Assembly: GCA_000388065.2 (NCBI GenBank)
Contig: KB932214.1
Reading direction: 5' to 3' (one strand)
DNA length: 7,380 nt
DNA from: Fonticula alba ATCC 38817
Lineage: Eukaryota > Protista > Nucleariida
Shown: positions 66 to 7,380 of the stretch, one piece after another
Layout of the letters: every line of letters begins with the position of its first letter
How positions within the stretch are numbered: position 1 is the first letter of the stretch
Program-made: the position numbers and the translations under genes
Notes under the pieces: generated by a model
Seen by the model: only the letters and a program-made list of their open reading frames with translations
Databases searched by the model: none
What the model was told of the DNA's origin: nothing

Positions 66-202
66 ATGGGGCGACCCCTTGACTCGCCGCTGACGCCCCC
101 CGGCGCCGGGGTCGTGCCGCTGTCCCAATTCCGCCTGTCCGAGCGCGACCTCGAGTCCTCCCCCCGGCATGTCTTCGAAATGATGGAGCGCCTGGGCAAG
201 GG
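66..202 (+). CDS. Kinase exon 1 (N-terminus to Gly-loop GKG, ends in phase 2)
   Basis: MGRPLDS...VFEMMERLGKG; donor GTGCGT at 203. An additional upstream exon cannot be excluded. Confidence 0.85.
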
Positions 203-3200
203 GTGCGTCCGCCGCGAGCCGGCCCCGTTGCATCATGTGCCCGCCCTCGCCCCCCTTCCCCTCGACTGACCTCCTCGCTTGCCGGTCCTCCGCCCGATTG
301 GCCGCGCCCCCCCCCCCCCCCCCCCCCGCCCCGCTCTCCCCGTCTGTCGTCACCCCGGGACCGGCAGATCGTTCGGCGTGGTGAACAAGGCGCGCCATCT
401 GGCCACCGGGCACATCGTGGCCGTCAAGCGTGTGACGTTGGATAACTCCCCGGCGGCCGAGGCCGAGCGCGTGGCCGTCCTCAATGAGGTGGAGTGCATG
501 CGTGCCCTGGACTCGCCCTTCGTCGTCCGGTTCTTCGGGCACTTCGTCCGCGCCAAGCGTCTCTGGGTGCGCCTCCGTTTTCTCTCTCTCTCTCTCTCTC
601 CCCCCCCCCCGCTGCCCTCCATCTCCCTCCCTCGATGTGCCATCGGCGGCTGACATCCATGTCCCCCCCTCCGCCGGGCAGATCGCCATGGAGTACTGCG
701 CCGTGGGCAGCATCCAGGAGGCCATGAACATCGCACAGGAGCCCTTGACCGAGTTGCAGGTGGCCCTCATCTGCAAGGACGTACGTGTCATGCCGGCTTG
801 TCCGTGCCTTTTCCCTCCTCTTGCACGCAACATGCAGCACACTGGCGCCCCCCNNNNNNNNNNCCCCCCGGCGAGGCCCGGCAGGCCAAGCAAGGCAACA
901 ACCCGGGGCCCTGTTAAATATGCGCGCCTCCTTCCCCGTTCGGGGCGAATGTGCCCCCGGCCCAAGTCGTCCCCTCCGGGCGTCGGCGATCGGCCGTGTT
1001 CCCGGGCGTTTTCTGCCCTCCCCCGCCCCCCCGGTCGCGGCCGGCCAAAGCCCCTGGCTGCCCCGGGGTGTTCCCACACGCCCGCCAGCCGATCCACCTC
1101 CGCCGCCCCCCCCGGGTCTCCCTCGGGTCTTGCCTGGACGAGGGGGGGCGGGCGTCTGCGCACCCCGGGGCGGAACGCGCCGCTCCGCCCGCCGCCAGGC
1201 CTCATGATCGGACCCGGGCCGGCGGCCCACACGCTGTCCCCACGATCGCCCCCCCCCTGCACCCGCCCCCGGCGGTTACACTTGTGCTCGGAAATGCCTG
1301 CTCCGGGGGCCGGGGGGCGAGCCCGCGCAAAGAACACACCCCGCACCCGCCCGGGGCGTTCCCCCTCCGGCGCGGGGAGCCCCCGTCCCCCGGGGCCGTT
1401 GTGCATGCGCTCCCCGAACCCCGCCCGCCTCGCATCCGCCATATTCACAACATAATATTCATTTGCACATACACACGAACACGCACACACGCACACACGC
1501 AGGGCTCCTGCTGCGGGCCCCACTGTTTGTCCCCGCCCGCCGGGCGGACGGCGCCCAGCCCGCCCCCCCCCCCCCCTCCCCCAAACACGCCCGACCGCGG
1601 GATTTGCCCGGATCCGGTTGCAGCCATTTCCGGACTCCGGGGAGCGCTTCCCCACGTCGACCAGAGCACACTCTTGGCGCGGCGCCGCGCGGCCGGGCGC
1701 CGCGCCGCGCCCGGCGTAATCAAACCCCTCCCCTTGCCCCCCCCCCTCCAACCCCATCCTTCGCCCTACCTCTTCCTTTCTGCTCCCCCCCCCNNNNNNN
1801 NNNNNNNNNNNNNNNNNNNNNNNNNNNNNNNNNNNNNNNNNNNNNNNNNNNNNNNNNNNNNNNNNNNNNNNNNNNNNNNNNNNNNNNNNNNNNNNNNNNN
1901 NNNNNNNNNNNNNNNNNNNNNNNNNNNNNNNNNNNNNNNNNNNNNNNNNNNNNNNNNNNNNNNNNNNNNNNNNNNNNNNNNNNNNNNNNNNNNNNNNNNN
2001 NNNNNNNNNNNNNNNNNNNNNNNNNNNNNNNNNNNNNNNNNNNNNNNNNNNNNNNNNNNNNNNNNNNNNNNNNNNNNNNNNNNNNNNNNNNNNNNNNNNN
2101 NNNNNNNNNNNNNNNNNNNNNNNNNNNNNNNNNNNNNNNNNNNNNNNNNNNNNNNNNNNNNNNNNNNNNNNNNNNNNNNNNNNNNNNNNNNNNNNNNNNN
2201 NNNNNNNNNNNNNNNNNNNNNNNNNNNNNNNNNNNNNNNNNNNNNNNNNNNNNNNNNNNNNNNNNNNNNNNNNNNNNNNNNNNNNNNNNNNNNNNNNNNN
2301 NNNNNNNNNNNNNNNNNNNNNNNNNNNNNNNNNNNNNNNNNNNNNNNNNNNNNNNNNNNNNNNNNNNNNNNNNNNNNNNNNNNNNNNNNNNNNNNNNNNN
2401 NNNNNNNNNNNNNNNNNNNNNNNNNNNNNNNNNNNNNNNNNNNNNNNNNNNNNNNNNNNNNNNNNNNNNNNNNNNNNNCCCCCCCCGCCGCCCTCTCCTC
2501 CTGACACGCCCTTCTGCTCCCGAAACTCGCCTGCCCCGTCCGTGTCGCCTCCCCCGCCCTCCGCAGGTGCTCGGCGGACTGGCCTACCTCCACAGCCGGG
2601 GGAACATCCACCGCGATGTCAAGGCCGGCAACATCGTCATGACATCCGACGGTTACTGCAAGCTCGGTGCGCACTACCAGCGGGGCATGCCTCCGCCACC
2701 GCGCCGGCACACACCTAGCGCCCCATCCAATGCCTGCCACGCCCCGCCCGGCGCAACTGACACCCATGCCCTCGCAGTGGATTTCGGCGTGTCCGGCCAG
2801 CTGACCGCATCGACCATGCGGCGGCACACCCTCACCGGCACCCCGTGCTGGATCGCGCCCGAGGTGGTCACCGAGGACGGGGGCTACGACGTCCGGGCGG
2901 ACATCTGGTCGCTCGGCATCACGGTCCTGGAGATGGCCGAGGGCCGGGCCCCGAACGCCGGGATCAACCCCATGCTGGTGCGTCGGGCTCCGGCACATCT
3001 CCCACACTGGCCTCGCTCTCCCTCTCGCCCCGAGGGGCTGACGCGTGTTTCCCCCCCCCCTCAACCCGGCACACGCACACGCGCACAACAGCACCCCTTC
3101 ATCAAGAGCACCCCGGGCAACGGCCGCGCAGTGCTGGCCGAATTCGCCCTCCAGGTGATCGAGCTGAAGGACATGCAGAAGGCCGGCGGCAGCTCGCGGC

Positions 3201-4824
3201 GGACACCGCGCGCCGATGGCGGCGGCCGGCGTAGCGCGTCTTCCTCGTCGGCCGACTCGGGAACCATCATGTCCGGGCCCTCGCGCGGGGGGGAGGCCAC
3301 GTCCTCGCCCTCGCCCTCGCCCTCGCCCAGCAGCAGCCGCAGCAACAGTCACGGCGGCGGCGGCGGCGGCGGCGGCGGCTGTGGCAGCGCGGCCAACAGC
3401 ATTGACCCGTCGGACATTGCCAGCCTCCTGCGACAGGACGCCACTGGGCTGACCTCCCCCCGGCGGGGCCGCCGGTCCCTGGTGTCCAGCGGCATCTTCG
3501 ACTCGGTCCCGACCATGGGCGGGACACCGGGGGGGTCGCCCGGGGGCGGGCCCGTCGGCAGCCCGGCCGGGCCGATGTCCGGGCGCGGCACCTCGGCACG
3601 GTCCATCGCCGCCGCCCTGCCATGGGTCGGGGAGGAGGCGGCGGCCCCTGCCGGCACCATCCGGCGCCCGGGCCCCGGCGGGGCCACCAGCCCCCTGGTG
3701 TCTTCCCCGGACCTGGGAGCCTCGTCGGACGCCGGCGAGGACAGCGACTCCCTGGATGACGGGCTAAGCGACGGCGATGAGCATGATGGCGAGGCCGGGG
3801 AGCATTCGCTCGGGACCATGCGCTTCAGTGACTCGACCTTCGTCTATCGCGGGAGCGACAGCAGCGGCAGCGGCAGCGGGTCCGACAGCGACGGCCCGGG
3901 CGGGCCTTTCGATGCATCCGGGACCGTGCGCTTCAGCGACTCGACCTTCGTCTACCGCGGCAGCGACAGCAGCGGCAGCGGCAGCGGGTCCGACAGCGAC
4001 GGCCCGGGCGGGCCTTTCGATGCATCCGGCACCGTGCGCTTCAGCGACTCGACCTTCGTCTACCGCGGCAGTGACAGCGATGGCAGTGGCAGCGAGCACG
4101 ACAGCGACGGCCCGGGCGGGCCTTTCGATGCATCCGGCACCGTGCGCTTCAGCGACTCGACCTTCGTCTACCGCGGCAGTGACAGCGATGGCAGTGGCAG
4201 CGAGCATGAGGGCGCCGGCCGGGCCGGCGCCGGGACCGTGTATGTCGGGTCACCGCGGGGCACCGGCGCCGGCGGCGCCGGGCTGGCGGGCCTGAGCCTT
4301 GGCCACTCCTGCTCGGAGGACTCGCTGTCGGACAGCAGCGACAGCGGCGAGTCCTCCGATGGCGACGGGGACTTCGGTGCATCCGGCACCGTGCGCTTCA
4401 GCGACTCGACCTTCGTCTACCGCGGCGGGGACAGCGATGCCTCGGATGACTCGCTTTCGGATGAGGATGGCAGTGATGATGACCATGGCGGGGCCGGCCA
4501 TGGTGGCGGGTCTGCCACCATGCGCTTCAGCGACTCGACCTTTGTCTATCGCGGGAGCGACACCGACACGTCGGCCGATTCGCTTTCCGACGAGGACGCC
4601 GACGAGGCCCGCGGCCAGGCCCACCACGGGCTTGGCACCATGCGCTACAGCGACTCGACCTTTGTCATCCGGGGCAGCGACAGCGAGACCCCCAGCACGG
4701 AGGATGACGACGGGCCGGATGGCAGCCATGATGATCTGGCCCCCGGGTCGACGGATACCATGCGCATGTATGACAGGCCGTCGGGGCGGCCGGCCGGCCG
4801 GTTTGTCAGCGGGTCCGATGACGA

Positions 4825-4859
<35 letters not shown>

Positions 4860-5415
4860 CCAGCAGCCCTGCTGCCGAGTCCGATGATGGGCATGGTGAT
4901 GGGCACCAGGCGCGCGGCGGGGGCGCGGCCGCGGCCGCGGCCGGCACGGTGCGCATGATGGCCCGACCGGGCCCGGCGCTACATGTGAACACCGATGTCC
5001 TGTGCGTTGCGACGACGACGGCGGCGGCGGCCCGGCAGGCCGGGGCCTCGCGGTCGGCGCCACCCACTGCCATGGGCTTCCAGTCGACCGGGCAGGGGGC
5101 CCTGCTGTCGGCCGGTGGCGGTGGCGGTGGCGGTGTCGGGGCCACGGCCTCATCGGCTGGGGACCACCCGGCCGGCAGCATCGCCACCGAGCCGGTGAAT
5201 TATGCCCAAACCCGGGCCATGTTCGACAATCTGGCCCGCAGCAGCAGCGGCGGCGACCCGGCCCTGTCATCGCCCCCCCCGCCGATGACGCCGCAAAGCC
5301 CGGGCTTCGGCGGGTTCCCCCGGCGGGCGCCCGGCGGCGAGTACCACCCGGCGGCCCTGGCGGCCAAGCCCCCGTCCATCACCAGCGCCCCGGTGTCGCC
5401 GGTCCCCCCGTCGGT

Positions 5416-5446
<31 letters not shown>

Positions 5447-5452
5447 CACTGA
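66..5452 (+). CDS. STE20/GCK-II (MST1/2/Hippo-like) Ser/Thr protein kinase with long acidic repeat-containing tail; spliced join(66..202,368..566,682..780,2567..2666,2778..2977,3092..5452), 1031 aa
   Basis: Manual splicing at GT..CAG junctions gives a continuous frame: LSERDLESSPRHVFEMMERLGKG/SFGVVNKARHLATGHIVAVKRV...NEVECM...RLW/IAMEYCAVGS...LICKD/VLGGLAYLHSRGNIHRDVKAGNI...CKL/VDFGVSGQLTASTMRRHTLTGTPCWIAPEV...DIWSLGITVLEMAEGRAP...NPML/HPFIKS. This matches, from memory, MST1 (LDEDSLTKQPEEVFDVLEKLGEGSYG; HRDIKAGN; DFGVAGQL; DIWSLGITAIEMAEGKPP). ATG at 66 has A at -3 and G at +4; stop TGA at 5450-5452. Exact orthology is not certain. Confidence 0.9.
203..367 (+). other. Spliceosomal intron 1 (165 nt, phase 2)
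   Basis: GTGCGT...CAG; contains a long C run; in-frame TGA at 267-269. Confidence 0.88.
368..566 (+). CDS. Kinase exon 2 (subdomains I-IV: SFG, VAVK Lys, alphaC Glu)
   Basis: Acceptor CAG at 365-367; GG+A restores Gly; SFGVVNKARHLATGHIVAVKRV...LNEVECMRALDSPFVVRFFG...RLW; donor GTGCGC at 567. Confidence 0.92.
567..681 (+). other. Spliceosomal intron 2 (115 nt, phase 0)
   Basis: GTGCGC...CAG; branch-like GCTGAC at 649-654; (TC)n and C10 tracts. Confidence 0.9.
581..610. repeat. (TC)10 microsatellite followed by C10, intronic
   Basis: Directly visible. Confidence 0.9.
682..780 (+). CDS. Kinase exon 3 (hinge, IAMEYC...LICKD)
   Basis: Acceptor CAG at 679-681; IAMEYCAVGSIQEAMNIAQEPLTELQVALICKD; donor GTACGT at 781. 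Confidence 0.92.
854..863. other. Assembly gap (10 N)
   Basis: N run flanked by C runs. Confidence 1.
1794..2478. other. Assembly gap (685 N)
   Basis: N run flanked by C runs on both sides. Confidence 1.
2567..2666 (+). CDS. Kinase exon 4 (catalytic loop HRDVKAGN)
   Basis: Acceptor CAG at 2564-2566; VLGGLAYLHSRGNIHRDVKAGNIVMTSDGYCKL+G; donor GTGCGC at 2667. Confidence 0.93.
2667..2777 (+). other. Spliceosomal intron 4 (111 nt, phase 1)
   Basis: GTGCGC...CAG; ACTGAC at 2756-2761; removal restores KLVDFG. Confidence 0.9.
2778..2977 (+). CDS. Kinase exon 5 (DFG, activation loop, APE, subdomain IX)
   Basis: Acceptor CAG at 2775-2777; G+TG=Val, then DFGVSGQL...GTPCWIAPEV...DIWSLGITVLEMAEGRAPNAGINPML; donor GTGCGT at 2978. 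Confidence 0.93.
2978..3091 (+). other. Apparent intron 5 (114 nt, phase 0); possibly a chimera of two introns with an exon lost between them
   Basis: GTGCGT donor, GCTGAC at 3037-3042, C10 at 3051-3060, (CA)-rich end and CAG acceptor. The flanking exons lack kinase subdomains X-XI. Confidence 0.7.
3092..5452 (+). CDS. Terminal exon: end of kinase domain (HPF, alphaJ-like helix) plus Ser/Asp/Gly-rich tail with tandem repeats
   Basis: Acceptor CAG at 3089-3091; HPFIKSTPGNGRAVLAEFALQVIELK resembles MST1 HPFVRSAKGVSILRDLINEAMDVK; open for 786 codons to TGA. Internal introns cannot be excluded, but codons look coding throughout. Confidence 0.8.
3305..3379 (+). repeat. Coding simple repeats: (TCGCCC)4 = (SP)4 and (GGC)9 = poly-Gly
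   Basis: (TCGCCC)4 at 3305-3328; (GGC)9 at 3353-3379. Confidence 0.9.
3812..4207 (+). repeat. Coding tandem repeat, 108-bp (36-aa) period, about 3.7 copies
   Basis: Units start at 3812, 3920, 4028, 4136: GT(M/V)RFSDSTFVYRGSDS(S/D)GSGS(GS/EH)DSDGPGGPFDAS; near-identical at nucleotide level. Confidence 0.97.
4385..4684 (+). repeat. Three further copies of the repeat core with diverged acidic spacers
   Basis: Cores at 4385 (GTVRFSDSTFVYRGGD), 4514 (ATMRFSDSTFVYRGSD), 4634 (GTMRYSDSTFVIRGSD); spacing 129 and 120 bp; spacers share DSLSDED. Confidence 0.95.
4829..4858 (+). repeat. (AGC)10 poly-Ser
   Basis: Directly visible trinucleotide run in the kinase frame. Confidence 0.9.
5417..5443 (+). 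repeat. (GGC)9 poly-Gly at the extreme C-terminus
   Basis: Directly visible; followed by EH-stop. Confidence 0.9.
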
Positions 5453-6290
5453 TGGGGGCGTCTGCGGGCCGGTGCCCGGGTCGGCGCCCGTGCTTGGGCG
5501 TACGTGTGTGTGTGCTCCTGCGCGCGAGTCCATCGCCTCGGGCGCCGTGTGCATGCCTCGGGAGAGGCTGTTCGCTTGCCTGCGTTTGCGTGCGGCCGGG
5601 ATGTGAAGCCCGGCGGCGCGTTTTCCGACGTCCCCTCCCCCCCTCCTTCCTCCTCCTGTGTATTTTCCTTCCTCCTCTCCCGGGGGAGGTCGTGTCGTGC
5701 CCATGCTCGCGCGTTAGCTCCCCCTCCCCCCCCCCCCTGTCCTTGTTGTCCTGCTCCTCGCTCGGAGAAAATACCACCCCGGCACCTCGCGCCACGTTAG
5801 CCCGTTTGCCCGACAGAACGGGATCCCGCGGGGCGGCTGCCGCGCCAGAACACTCCATTCGGGTGCTGGAAGAGGGGGGCATGTTTCAGAACGCGGCCAG
5901 AACTCCATGCCTAATTTCTCTGGCGGATACCGAGGGAGCGCGAATAGTGCGGCGGGACCTCGGCACAGGGCGCGCTCCGCGGGCGTCCCTCTCCGGCGGG
6001 ACCTAACCGGTGGCACGGCGTCGGGCGGCGCGATGGGGCAAACACGTGGGAAGTCAGCCGCCTTGGGAGATTGGCACCGCCGGCCACCTGGACGCGGCCG
6101 TTCGGCCAGGTGGCCGGATTCAAATGGGCGGCACGCTCAGGGGAAAGTGCCCGCCCAATGGGTGCGAAAAGGGAAAAAAAGAAAAGAAAAATAGGGGCCG
6201 CGCCGGCCGGGGGGATGATCCGGCTAGGGTGCGCCGGGGTGCGGGGGCCAGCCGCGGGGGGGGAGGGTACGGGGAGGGGTGTGTGCGGAC

Positions 6291-6353
6291 GTGTGTGTGT
6301 GTGTGTGTGTGTGTATGTGCCCGTGTATATGCGGGTGTGGGTGTGGGTGTGGG
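6291..6353. repeat. (GT)12 microsatellite followed by (GGGTGT)3GGG
   Basis: (GT)12 at 6291-6314; (GGGTGT)3GGG at 6333-6353. Confidence 0.9.
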
Positions 6354-6788
6354 CCCCGATGTGCGCCCTCGCCTGTGGCCCCCCGGCAAAGGCGCCCCGG
6401 GTGCGGGGCTGGATGCGGGGCTGGGCACGGAGGGGGGGGGGGGGGGGATCGCGCAGCCCCCCAATTCTGCCTCCCATTCTTTGCGGTCGCCGCCCCCCCC
6501 CCCCAGCGCCGGCCGGCCTGTGCATCTGCGGCTTGCATCCTCGCGCTCTGGTTTTGGGAGTGCGTGCGGGCGCGGGGGACAAGTAGCCGGGCCGATGGGC
6601 CTGATGAGACCCGGGCCTGCACACCAGCCCTCGCCGATGGTCCGGCTGCTTCGCCGGCCGGCAGGCCCTGTTCGCTGTCGAGTCCGGCCTTCGGGGGTGG
6701 GGGGCGGGGGGCAGGCCTGCTCGGGGACATCCCCCCGGGGATCGGCGGCCACCTCGCATGGAGCCGATCCCAGGGCATGTTTCCGGGG

Positions 6789-6834
6789 GCACACGCGCGC
6801 GCGTGTGTGTGTGTGTGCGTGTGTGTGCGTGCAC
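6789..6834. repeat. 46-bp strictly alternating purine/pyrimidine tract (CA/CG/GT)
   Basis: gcacacgcgcgcgcgtgtgtgtgtgtgtgcgtgtgtgtgcgtgcac. Confidence 0.9.
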
Positions 6835-7380
6835 CCGCGCACACATCTGCCGATACAGGGCGCCGACCCCCCCCCTGCGGCCAAGACACCAACTCGCCGG
6901 GCCCGTTCCGGTCGGACCAGCCATTTGGCCCATGGCCGGTGGGGGGGCGTTTGCCTGACAACCGCGCCGCCGCCCTCGCTGGACTCCTCTGCCGGCGGAG
7001 GGGGAGGGCAGCGGCTTCGGTCGATTGGCCTGCCCTGCCTTGCCGGGCGAGGCCCCGGCCCGAGGTGAAACCGGCGCCCTCCTTCCCATGGTGCCTGGTG
7101 ACGGGCTCGCGTGCCCTGGCATGCTGGGTTTCCCGCGCACCTGAGGCCCGGCGCCCGGCCGCACCCCGGGCCCGGCGCCTCGAGCGAGGGTATGGGCTCG
7201 GGTCGGTGCCGGCACTCCGCCGAGCGAACTTGCCAGTGCACCCGGGCACGGCACCGGGTGCGCTGGCCCGACACGGCCGTGCCCCTCAGCTGGCGAGGGC
7301 GCCCGCACAGGCACGCAGGCTGGTCGTCTTTCGGCGCGGCGCGGCCGCCGGATGCGGCCCGGCGATCCGAGTGGCTGCGC

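Follow-up and report, generated by a model that had tools for sequence, protein, structure and literature searches.

Why should a protein kinase that lacks part of its catalytic domain carry in its tail, seven times over, nearly the same sixteen residues? The question is raised by a stretch of 7,380 nucleotides from the genome of the amoeba Fonticula alba (G000:C14:48250-55629; the whole of this stretch is called the window below), which has a G+C content of about 70-78% and contains a single spliced gene, encoded by the + strand. Its public protein product, P0001 (1031 amino acids), is named "STE/STE20/MST protein kinase [Fonticula alba]" by NCBI. The answer we favor, with a probability of roughly 0.5, is that the array arose when a short linear motif of the Hippo linker was amplified in this lineage, and that it would most likely serve as a multivalent docking strip for proteins that read phosphothreonine.

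The matter is of some interest because in animals multisite docking on the MST linker recruits both an activating partner, MOB1, and (via SLMAP) an off-switch, STRIPAK. The array would be a natural case of one docking site copied seven times nearly unchanged, and a reagent for the study of avidity and of the choice among readers. If, on the other hand, the array is only a repeat drifting along in a paralogue that is dying out, then the finding has little weight.

The array and its constant core

The array and the scattered sites that resemble it are these (positions within the window):

3812-4684, + strand: array of seven modules, GT[M/V]R[F/Y]SDSTFV[Y/I]RG[S/G]D, in the last exon, found by translation and by repeat search
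3812-3859, + strand: core 1
3920-3967, + strand: core 2
4028-4075, + strand: core 3
4136-4183, + strand: core 4
4385-4432, + strand: core 5
4514-4561, + strand: core 6
4634-4681, + strand: core 7
3811-4202, + strand: young part of the array (units 1-4); period of 108 nucleotides, 3.6 copies, 95% matches by Tandem Repeats Finder
3257-3271, + strand: degenerate site SGTIM (Thr 303)
3653-3667, + strand: degenerate site GTIRR (Thr 434)
4232-4246, + strand: degenerate site GTVYV (Thr 627), within the long spacer that follows unit 4
4754-4768, + strand: degenerate site DTMRM (Thr 801), 120 nucleotides past unit 7
4943-4957, + strand: degenerate site GTVRM (Thr 864)

The initial annotation of the window had claimed seven copies of a 16-residue core between 3812 and 4684, and translation and repeat search agree. 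The five degenerate relatives it had listed (at 3260, 3653, 4232, 4754 and 4943) are all where it placed them, and there is one more, VPTMGG, at residue 386 of P0001. From start to start, the units are spaced by 108, 108, 108, 249, 129 and 120 nucleotides. The spacers that separate the cores are acidic and rich in serine, range from 20 to 67 residues, and can be aligned only in part. When the seven units are aligned over 30 columns, 11 of the 16 core residues prove invariant (T2, R4, S6, D7, S8, T9, F10, V11, R13, G14 and D16).

Sites of this type are far more common in the tail than its composition would predict. T[MVI][RK] occurs 10 times in the 786 residues of the tail against an expectation of 0.21, a count attained in none of 5000 shuffles, and even with the seven cores removed there are 3 against an expected 0.11 (p 4e-4). 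Counting more broadly, there are 20 instances of T-[MVILFY], including 11 of [GD]T[MVI] and the same 10 of T[MVI][RK], all far in excess of shuffled expectation. The tail of P0001 therefore displays the trait, characteristic of the MST family, of a linker with several Thr-hydrophobic motifs.

The initial annotation also had it that the core is held constant while the spacers diverge. This claim stands, with one caveat. Units 1-4 are young tandem duplicates with a period of 108 nucleotides: the spacer after unit 1 is the same as the spacer after unit 2, and core 3 is identical to core 4. The sameness of these four units is due in part to the recency of their duplication, and the informative comparisons involve units 1, 5, 6 and 7. 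Nonetheless, the minimum number of steps over the seven cores comes to 7 synonymous and 5 nonsynonymous, against a neutral ratio of sites of about 11:37 (binomial P 0.009), and all five of the nonsynonymous changes (G/A, M/V, F/Y, Y/I and S/G) are conservative or placed at the edge of the core. Compared pairwise, the cores differ at a proportion of 0.2-0.56 of synonymous sites but only 0.03-0.15 of nonsynonymous sites. These figures support the view that the core has been under purifying selection while the spacers have drifted.

Kinship of the unit with the Hippo linker

Within the 31-Mb genome of F. alba, the module is restricted to the gene encoding P0001. A word-indexed protein search with the 787-residue tail gave no match beyond P0001 itself, and when a profile of the seven units was run exhaustively against 1.84 billion representative proteins (a proteome search of the sort the initial annotation had proposed), it found P0001 (E 3e-92) and one other protein, P0240. 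The latter was rejected as a relative, since on inspection it proved to contain an unrelated S/D/G-rich repeat (...VERGSDSHGSQ...). No Pfam family was found in the 787-residue tail at E values up to 0.1, nor did any curated repeat or domain model match it. The collections searched contain one fonticulid genome only.

The initial annotation had not recognized the repeat from any known family, and this needs correction, as it matches an element present in single copy in other Hippo kinases. In the sequences compared, canonical Hippo kinases bearing a SARAH domain carry one two-threonine element where the linker begins. In Phlyctochytrium it is DTVRLSESTM, whose two Thr are spaced just as in the Fonticula unit; in Spizellomyces it is DTVRLDHATIK, in Powellomyces GTMRLDETMK, in Fimicolochytrium ETMRLEGTMR, and in vertebrate STK3 (MST2) GTMRATSTM, which contains T336. 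Judging from these alignments, the Fonticula unit is an amplified version of the single-copy element and not an orphan.

The likeness to the linker of MST1/MST2 (Drosophila Hippo) goes beyond the element itself. In both cases, the sites are found in an acidic, low-complexity segment right after an MST-family kinase domain. In both, the grammar comprises G-T-[M/V]-[R/K] and a Thr with hydrophobic residues after it (the unit aligns with GTMRATSTM as well as with the chytrid DTVRLSESTM). And in both, there are several redundant sites: MST2 has 7 TM motifs (PMC5663475), and one chytrid Hippo kinase has 7 instances of GT[MVI]. The differences are just as clear. In P0001 a single element forms a regular tandem array in which 11 residues never vary, while the sites of MST1/MST2 are scattered and dissimilar; P0001 has neither a SARAH domain nor kinase subdomains X-XI; no clear secondary helix for MOB1 (of the PSFLEYF/YQPAFMKY type) comes right after a site; and the protein is a paralogue that exists beside a more canonical Hippo-like gene. 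One segment, NYAQTRAMFDNL (about nucleotides 5192-5227, residues 946-957), is faintly like the helix that makes the secondary contact with MOB1 in canonical Hippo linkers (YQPAFMKYL, PSFLEYF). We do not claim it as a relic of that helix, as the resemblance is too weak and the distance to the closest Thr site, some 80 residues, is too great.

The closest relatives of P0001 permit a finer comparison. P0002 (698 amino acids) and P0124 (511 amino acids) are MST-like kinases of uncultured organisms from metagenomes of the Joint Genome Institute (JGI). Their tails, like that of P0001, are acidic and contain repeated motifs of the form T-hydrophobic-basic, with 3-4 repeats of D-T-[VI]-[KR]-[ILV]-[ST] in each. 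T[MVI][RK] occurs 5 times in P0002 against an expected 0.41 and 4 times in P0124 against an expected 0.15 (more than 10-fold). Unlike P0001, both have complete kinase domains (Pkinase 2-263 and 4-263, respectively), and their repeats are of only about 8 residues, without the SDSTFVYRG half and without long tandem repeats in the DNA. When the unit is compared with the tails of these relatives (the initial annotation had suggested a comparison of orthologue tails), its first half is seen to be kept as a repeated D-T-V-K-[IL]-[ST], but the STFVYRG half is not. The repeated core that is conserved across relatives is, then, T-hydrophobic-basic-hydrophobic-S/T, or the first half of the unit, and the STFVYRG half belongs to Fonticula alone, its single-copy parallel in chytrids aside.

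What would be new, therefore, is not the linker motif, which is known, but its regular seven-fold amplification in a truncated MST paralogue. Arrays of phosphothreonine sites read by FHA domains exist elsewhere (the SDT repeats of MDC1, read by NBS1, and Rad9, read by Rad53), and these too have tandem Thr motifs and acidic Ser-rich spacers, by which they bring about the multivalent, phosphorylation-dependent recruitment that is proposed here for P0001. They differ from the array of P0001 in that their sites are of the acidic CK2 type or of the TQ type, they are the targets of other kinases, and they are evolutionarily unrelated.

A different arrangement of motif and kinase was encountered in passing. 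Five metagenomic proteins from uncultured relatives (P0121, P0122, P0123, P0127 and P0131) contain a tandem pair of MST-like kinase domains with a linker between them; in P0121 and P0122, that linker has T-M type motifs. This architecture is not known from the Hippo kinases described to date. In P0131, the stretch KRFSDTTLVMRSGES (residues ~226-241), which lies in the linker that connects the two kinase domains, looks like the latter half of the Fonticula unit, RFSDSTFVYRGSD. It stands alone, the profile search did not return it, and the likeness may be fortuitous.

The kinase and its relatives in F. alba

The gene is laid out as follows, P0001 being the sole full-length protein used and the exons having been searched piecewise:

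~66-203, 369-566, 682-783, 2570-2665, 2777-2977 and 3092-5449, + strand: exons, from P0001 mapped onto the window
66-2977, + strand: five 5' exons, encoding kinase subdomains I-IX; Pkinase matches on the exon pieces, with MST1/2 the best solved relatives
2978-3091, + strand: intron of 114 nucleotides between ...GINPML and HPFIK, where the paralogue called C1 (below) has its exon for subdomains X-XI
3092-5452, + strand: last exon, encoding the final part of the kinase fold (HPFIK followed by a helix) and the tail of 786 residues, in which Ser, Gly, Asp and Ala abound; it ends at a TGA stop

The window contains two runs of N, at 854-863 (10 nucleotides) and 1794-2478 (685 nucleotides), both within the long intron that extends from the exon ending at 783 to the exon starting at 2570. 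The coding sequence appears to be intact across this intron, as ...ICKDV joins LGGLAYLH just as it does in other MST kinases. The in-frame G+C fraction at third codon positions (GC3) is 0.86-0.90 in the tail and 0.88-0.97 in the kinase exons, compared to 0.58-0.79 in introns and downstream DNA.

To what family does the kinase belong? Among solved structures, MST1/2 match it with 213-223 bits, and STK24/25/MST4 (GCK-III) with 187-195 bits, which supports the placement of the catalytic domain in the MST (GCK-II) family. A tree built from about 105-158 columns, in which two other F. alba kinases (C1 and C3) were entered as single, unjoined exons, puts P0001 together with P0002 (support 98/92) and then with the C3 kinase (99/96). 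This group falls weakly (83/76) with the C1 kinase and a SARAH-bearing Hippo kinase of a chytrid, the YSK/GCK-III kinases being separate. P0124 is outside the tree, though its kinase domain shows the same sequence signatures as those of P0001 and P0002. The branch leading to P0001 is long (0.71, versus 0.094 for P0002, with which it has 69% identity over 105 columns). The initial annotation had called the protein a Hippo/MST-like kinase, and the MST half of that name survives (223 versus 194 bits for GCK-III, and the tree). The Hippo half does not: by its position and branch length the gene is a fast-evolving, lineage-specific MST paralogue rather than the orthologue of Hippo.

The kinase is also incomplete. 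The Pkinase match covers model positions 2-198 of 263 and thus falls short of a full domain (subdomains I-XI). An in-frame reading through the intron at 2978-3091 encounters no stop and adds 38 unrelated residues, and nothing similar to subdomains X-XI is encoded in any frame of 2978-3091. The C1 paralogue (L024) has introns at the same two places, and these enclose a single exon (AVFLIPTKPPP...AESLL) corresponding to the part missing from P0001. The comparison indicates a clean loss of one exon. What is left has been well kept: in an alignment of 44 rows (P0001 and 43 MST/YSK kinases), P0001 has the shared residue at every invariant column of subdomains I-IX. In the model of the kinase that AlphaFold2 (AF2) made from this alignment, confidence is good as far as helix alphaF and poor beyond it. 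No match to the SARAH domain (PF11629) was found in the tail of P0001 or in six frames of the F. alba genome, although a short domain split by an intron can be missed.

The absence of subdomains X-XI makes it doubtful that P0001 could phosphorylate itself. Phosphorylation in trans by the C1 or C3 paralogue would seem at least as likely as autophosphorylation. The residue that follows DFG in P0001 is Val, as in MST4; it is this Val of MST4 that was swapped for the Phe of the Ser-preferring PAK4 (PMC6445471).

Besides the gene for P0001, F. alba has at least two further genes of the MST family. The C1 gene (L024, G000:C1:253500-261500, approximately 1240-3830) is more canonical and Hippo-like than the gene for P0001. 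It encodes a complete kinase domain, an exon of which matches MST1 with 205 bits and MST3 with 159, and its linker contains YDTMIVNSD, FGTMQG, HGTMVSMNK and EPYFMKI, which resemble the motifs of animals and chytrids. Two pieces that look by eye like parts of a SARAH domain (KSMQELLAAVN and DALLRQRYAVPRQP) immediately precede an assembly gap at 3908-4177; taken alone, they have no match in Pfam. The C3 gene (L025, G000:C3:2203500-2211500) encodes an MST-like kinase at about 2200-3500 and has an FHA exon downstream on the same strand (4790-5212). Between the two is a long Pro/Gln-rich stretch, and directly before the FHA exon is a pyrimidine-rich tract ending in TAG. As only single exons were read, the SARAH domain of C1 and the fusion of kinase and FHA in C3 are candidate architectures.

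Potential readers of phosphothreonine are encoded as well. Three FHA domains have SLMAP (6AR0) as their best solved match: C7:665175 (E 2e-15), C7:2056475 (E 2e-9) and C3:2208409 (E 1e-7). The first (L026, G000:C7:665175-665399) sits in an open frame of 892 amino acids, and its protein may be a true orthologue of SLMAP/Far9; the second is L028 (G000:C7:2056475-2056654). The third, that of the C3 gene, retains S52, R53, H55 and S75. The F. alba orthologue of MOB1 (G000:C4:710530) matches human MOB1B with 260 bits and keeps K-R-L-F-R, the K-R-x-x-R of the phosphate pocket, which in MOB1 consists of K153, R154 and R157. A published survey that required the SARAH domain scored F. alba as lacking Hippo (PMC7035326). 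A functional Warts of F. alba has been published (PMC7035326). The presence of three MST-family kinases with linker motifs like those of animals and chytrids, in a genome surveyed as without Hippo, bears on how the pathway evolved.

Proposed docking and its alternatives

Each unit has two candidate Thr sites, as the initial annotation had proposed, and both conform in the main to the rules known for writers and readers. What the annotation had said of those rules agrees with the literature: pT-M sites of the MST linker bind MOB1 and the FHA domain of SLMAP (PMC5663475, PMC5461540), and non-PAK STE20 kinases prefer Thr with a hydrophobic residue at +1 and basic residues at +2 to +4 (PMC6445471). 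The first threonine (Thr-1, T-[M/V]-R) obeys this last rule fully, and the second (Thr-2, T-F-V-Y-R) obeys it at +1 and +4. MOB1 favors a phosphothreonine followed by three hydrophobic residues (+1 to +3), with basic ones disfavored in those positions (PMC5461540). Thr-2 is followed in all seven units by F-V-Y or F-V-I, as the rule calls for, but Thr-1, with Arg at +2, does not comply. The consensus for the SLMAP FHA domain is E/D-G-pT-M-x-R/K; the MST2 peptide VESVGpTMRAT (T336) binds that domain with a dissociation constant of 1.1 uM, and T336, along with two other sites, mediates both the binding of SLMAP and feedback inhibition (PMC5663475). Thr-1 has Gly at -1 in six of the seven units, Met or Val at +1, and Arg at +2, which is the pattern of T336.

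If these rules hold in Fonticula, then an MST-type kinase would phosphorylate both Thr-1 (G-T-[M/V]-R) and Thr-2 (S-T-F-V-Y-R). Because the kinase domain of P0001 is without subdomains X-XI, the writer may be the C1 or C3 paralogue acting in trans rather than P0001 itself. The reader of phosphorylated Thr-1 would be an SLMAP-type FHA domain, by analogy with T336 of human MST2, and that of phosphorylated Thr-2, with the three hydrophobic residues after it, would be MOB1. Each unit would then provide one phosphosite of the FHA type and one of the MOB1 type, seven times over, and the seven units plus five degenerate sites could lead to avidity or to graded recruitment that depends on copy number. 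The acidic, Ser-rich spacers would keep the strip disordered and may add charge of the CK2 type. Other known ligand motifs were considered for the array and rejected by eye, as required residues are missing: RVxF of PP1, the mode-1 and mode-2 motifs of 14-3-3, the LATS/NDR motif (HxRxxS/T), and DSGxxS of beta-TrCP.

Several observations weigh against docking. The fit of Thr-1 to the SLMAP consensus is imperfect, with Ser, Leu or Gly in place of the acidic residue at -2 and with the basic residue at +2 rather than +3. The STFVYRG half is not conserved in the nearest relatives, P0002 and P0124. The duplications behind units 1-4 are recent enough that the number of these units may be neutral. The long branch and the missing subdomains X-XI suggest that the gene could be decaying. 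Finally, AF2 predicts a beta-hairpin for each core, with values of the predicted local distance difference test (pLDDT) of 60-80, and a disordered docking motif need not form one.

The alternative that survives best, though we consider it rather unlikely, is that the repeat expanded neutrally in a degenerating paralogue: a Hippo-like gene was duplicated, the copy lost an exon of the kinase domain and its SARAH domain, a piece of the low-complexity tail was amplified by replication slippage or unequal crossing-over, and the result is now without function. Such a history would fit the 95%-identical, 108-nucleotide repeat of units 1-4 with its identical spacers, the missing subdomains, the long branch, and the occurrence of the module in no other protein. 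Long open reading frames, moreover, are cheap in DNA of at least 70% G+C, and the window has many spurious ones. It would not fit so well with a core that has changed by 7 synonymous and 5 conservative nonsynonymous steps (P 0.009) amidst spacers that vary in both length and sequence, with a kinase that matches all 43 aligned MST/YSK kinases at every invariant column, or with a GC3 of 0.86-0.90 maintained throughout the tail. Relatives with intact kinases, moreover, also have repeated T-V-K motifs.

Quite unlikely is the notion that the array is structural, the core being an amphipathic beta-hairpin (strand MRFS, turn DS, strand TFVYR) whose self-association, inside one molecule or from one molecule to another, replaces that of the lost SARAH coiled coil. 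Any phosphorylation would in that case control folding and would not serve to make docking sites. Both strands do alternate between hydrophobic and polar residues, and AF2, run on the single sequence, gives strand-turn-strand at all seven cores, most blocks having pLDDT of about 60-80 (predicted template modelling score 0.51) and the spacers below 50. But that model was made without an alignment and has a mean pLDDT of 49, and disordered acidic spacers of 20-67 residues would be unusual in a folded beta-repeat. The array has no match in Pfam or in another repeat family. The homologous element of the canonical Hippo linker, furthermore, is present in single copy, and the pT-M sites of that linker are bound as short phosphopeptides.

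The T-F type sites of MOB1 and LATS/NDR kinases resemble those of the array. That the array is a decoy, a sink of many optimal MST-type sites that damps signaling by competing with Warts and MOB1 for active Hippo-type kinases, or by being read by some other module (14-3-3 or another FHA protein), is improbable. In its favor, the sites fit the STE20 motif, the kinase of P0001 is probably impaired, and F. alba has a functional Warts (PMC7035326). Against it, the residues around the sites depart at -1 from the AGC hydrophobic motif, and a reading of the sequence by eye shows neither a mode-1 nor a mode-2 motif for 14-3-3.

If the array is indeed a docking strip, one can speculate further, at some remove from the evidence and with little confidence, that the jobs of the Hippo kinase have been split in F. 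alba. The C1 gene would supply an MST of canonical appearance, C3 would be both writer and reader, and the gene considered here (on C14) would supply a dedicated multivalent phospho-scaffold, assembling the C3 kinase, MOB1 and Warts according to copy number. P0001 would in that case be a crippled kinase with an array of 7-12 sites of the motif recognized by MOB1 and by FHA domains like that of C3, and the graded assembly might take place perhaps during aggregation and fruiting.

A minor feature of the window bears on how it should be read. Many long overlapping open reading frames (300-500 amino acids) are found on both strands, for example 5911-7314 (- strand) and 6010-7068 (+ strand), with products rich in Pro, Arg and Gly. 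Their length can be attributed to the high G+C content. GC3 of the coding type is absent from those long frames that were checked (5456-6355), and in this window, therefore, the length of an open reading frame is no evidence for a gene.

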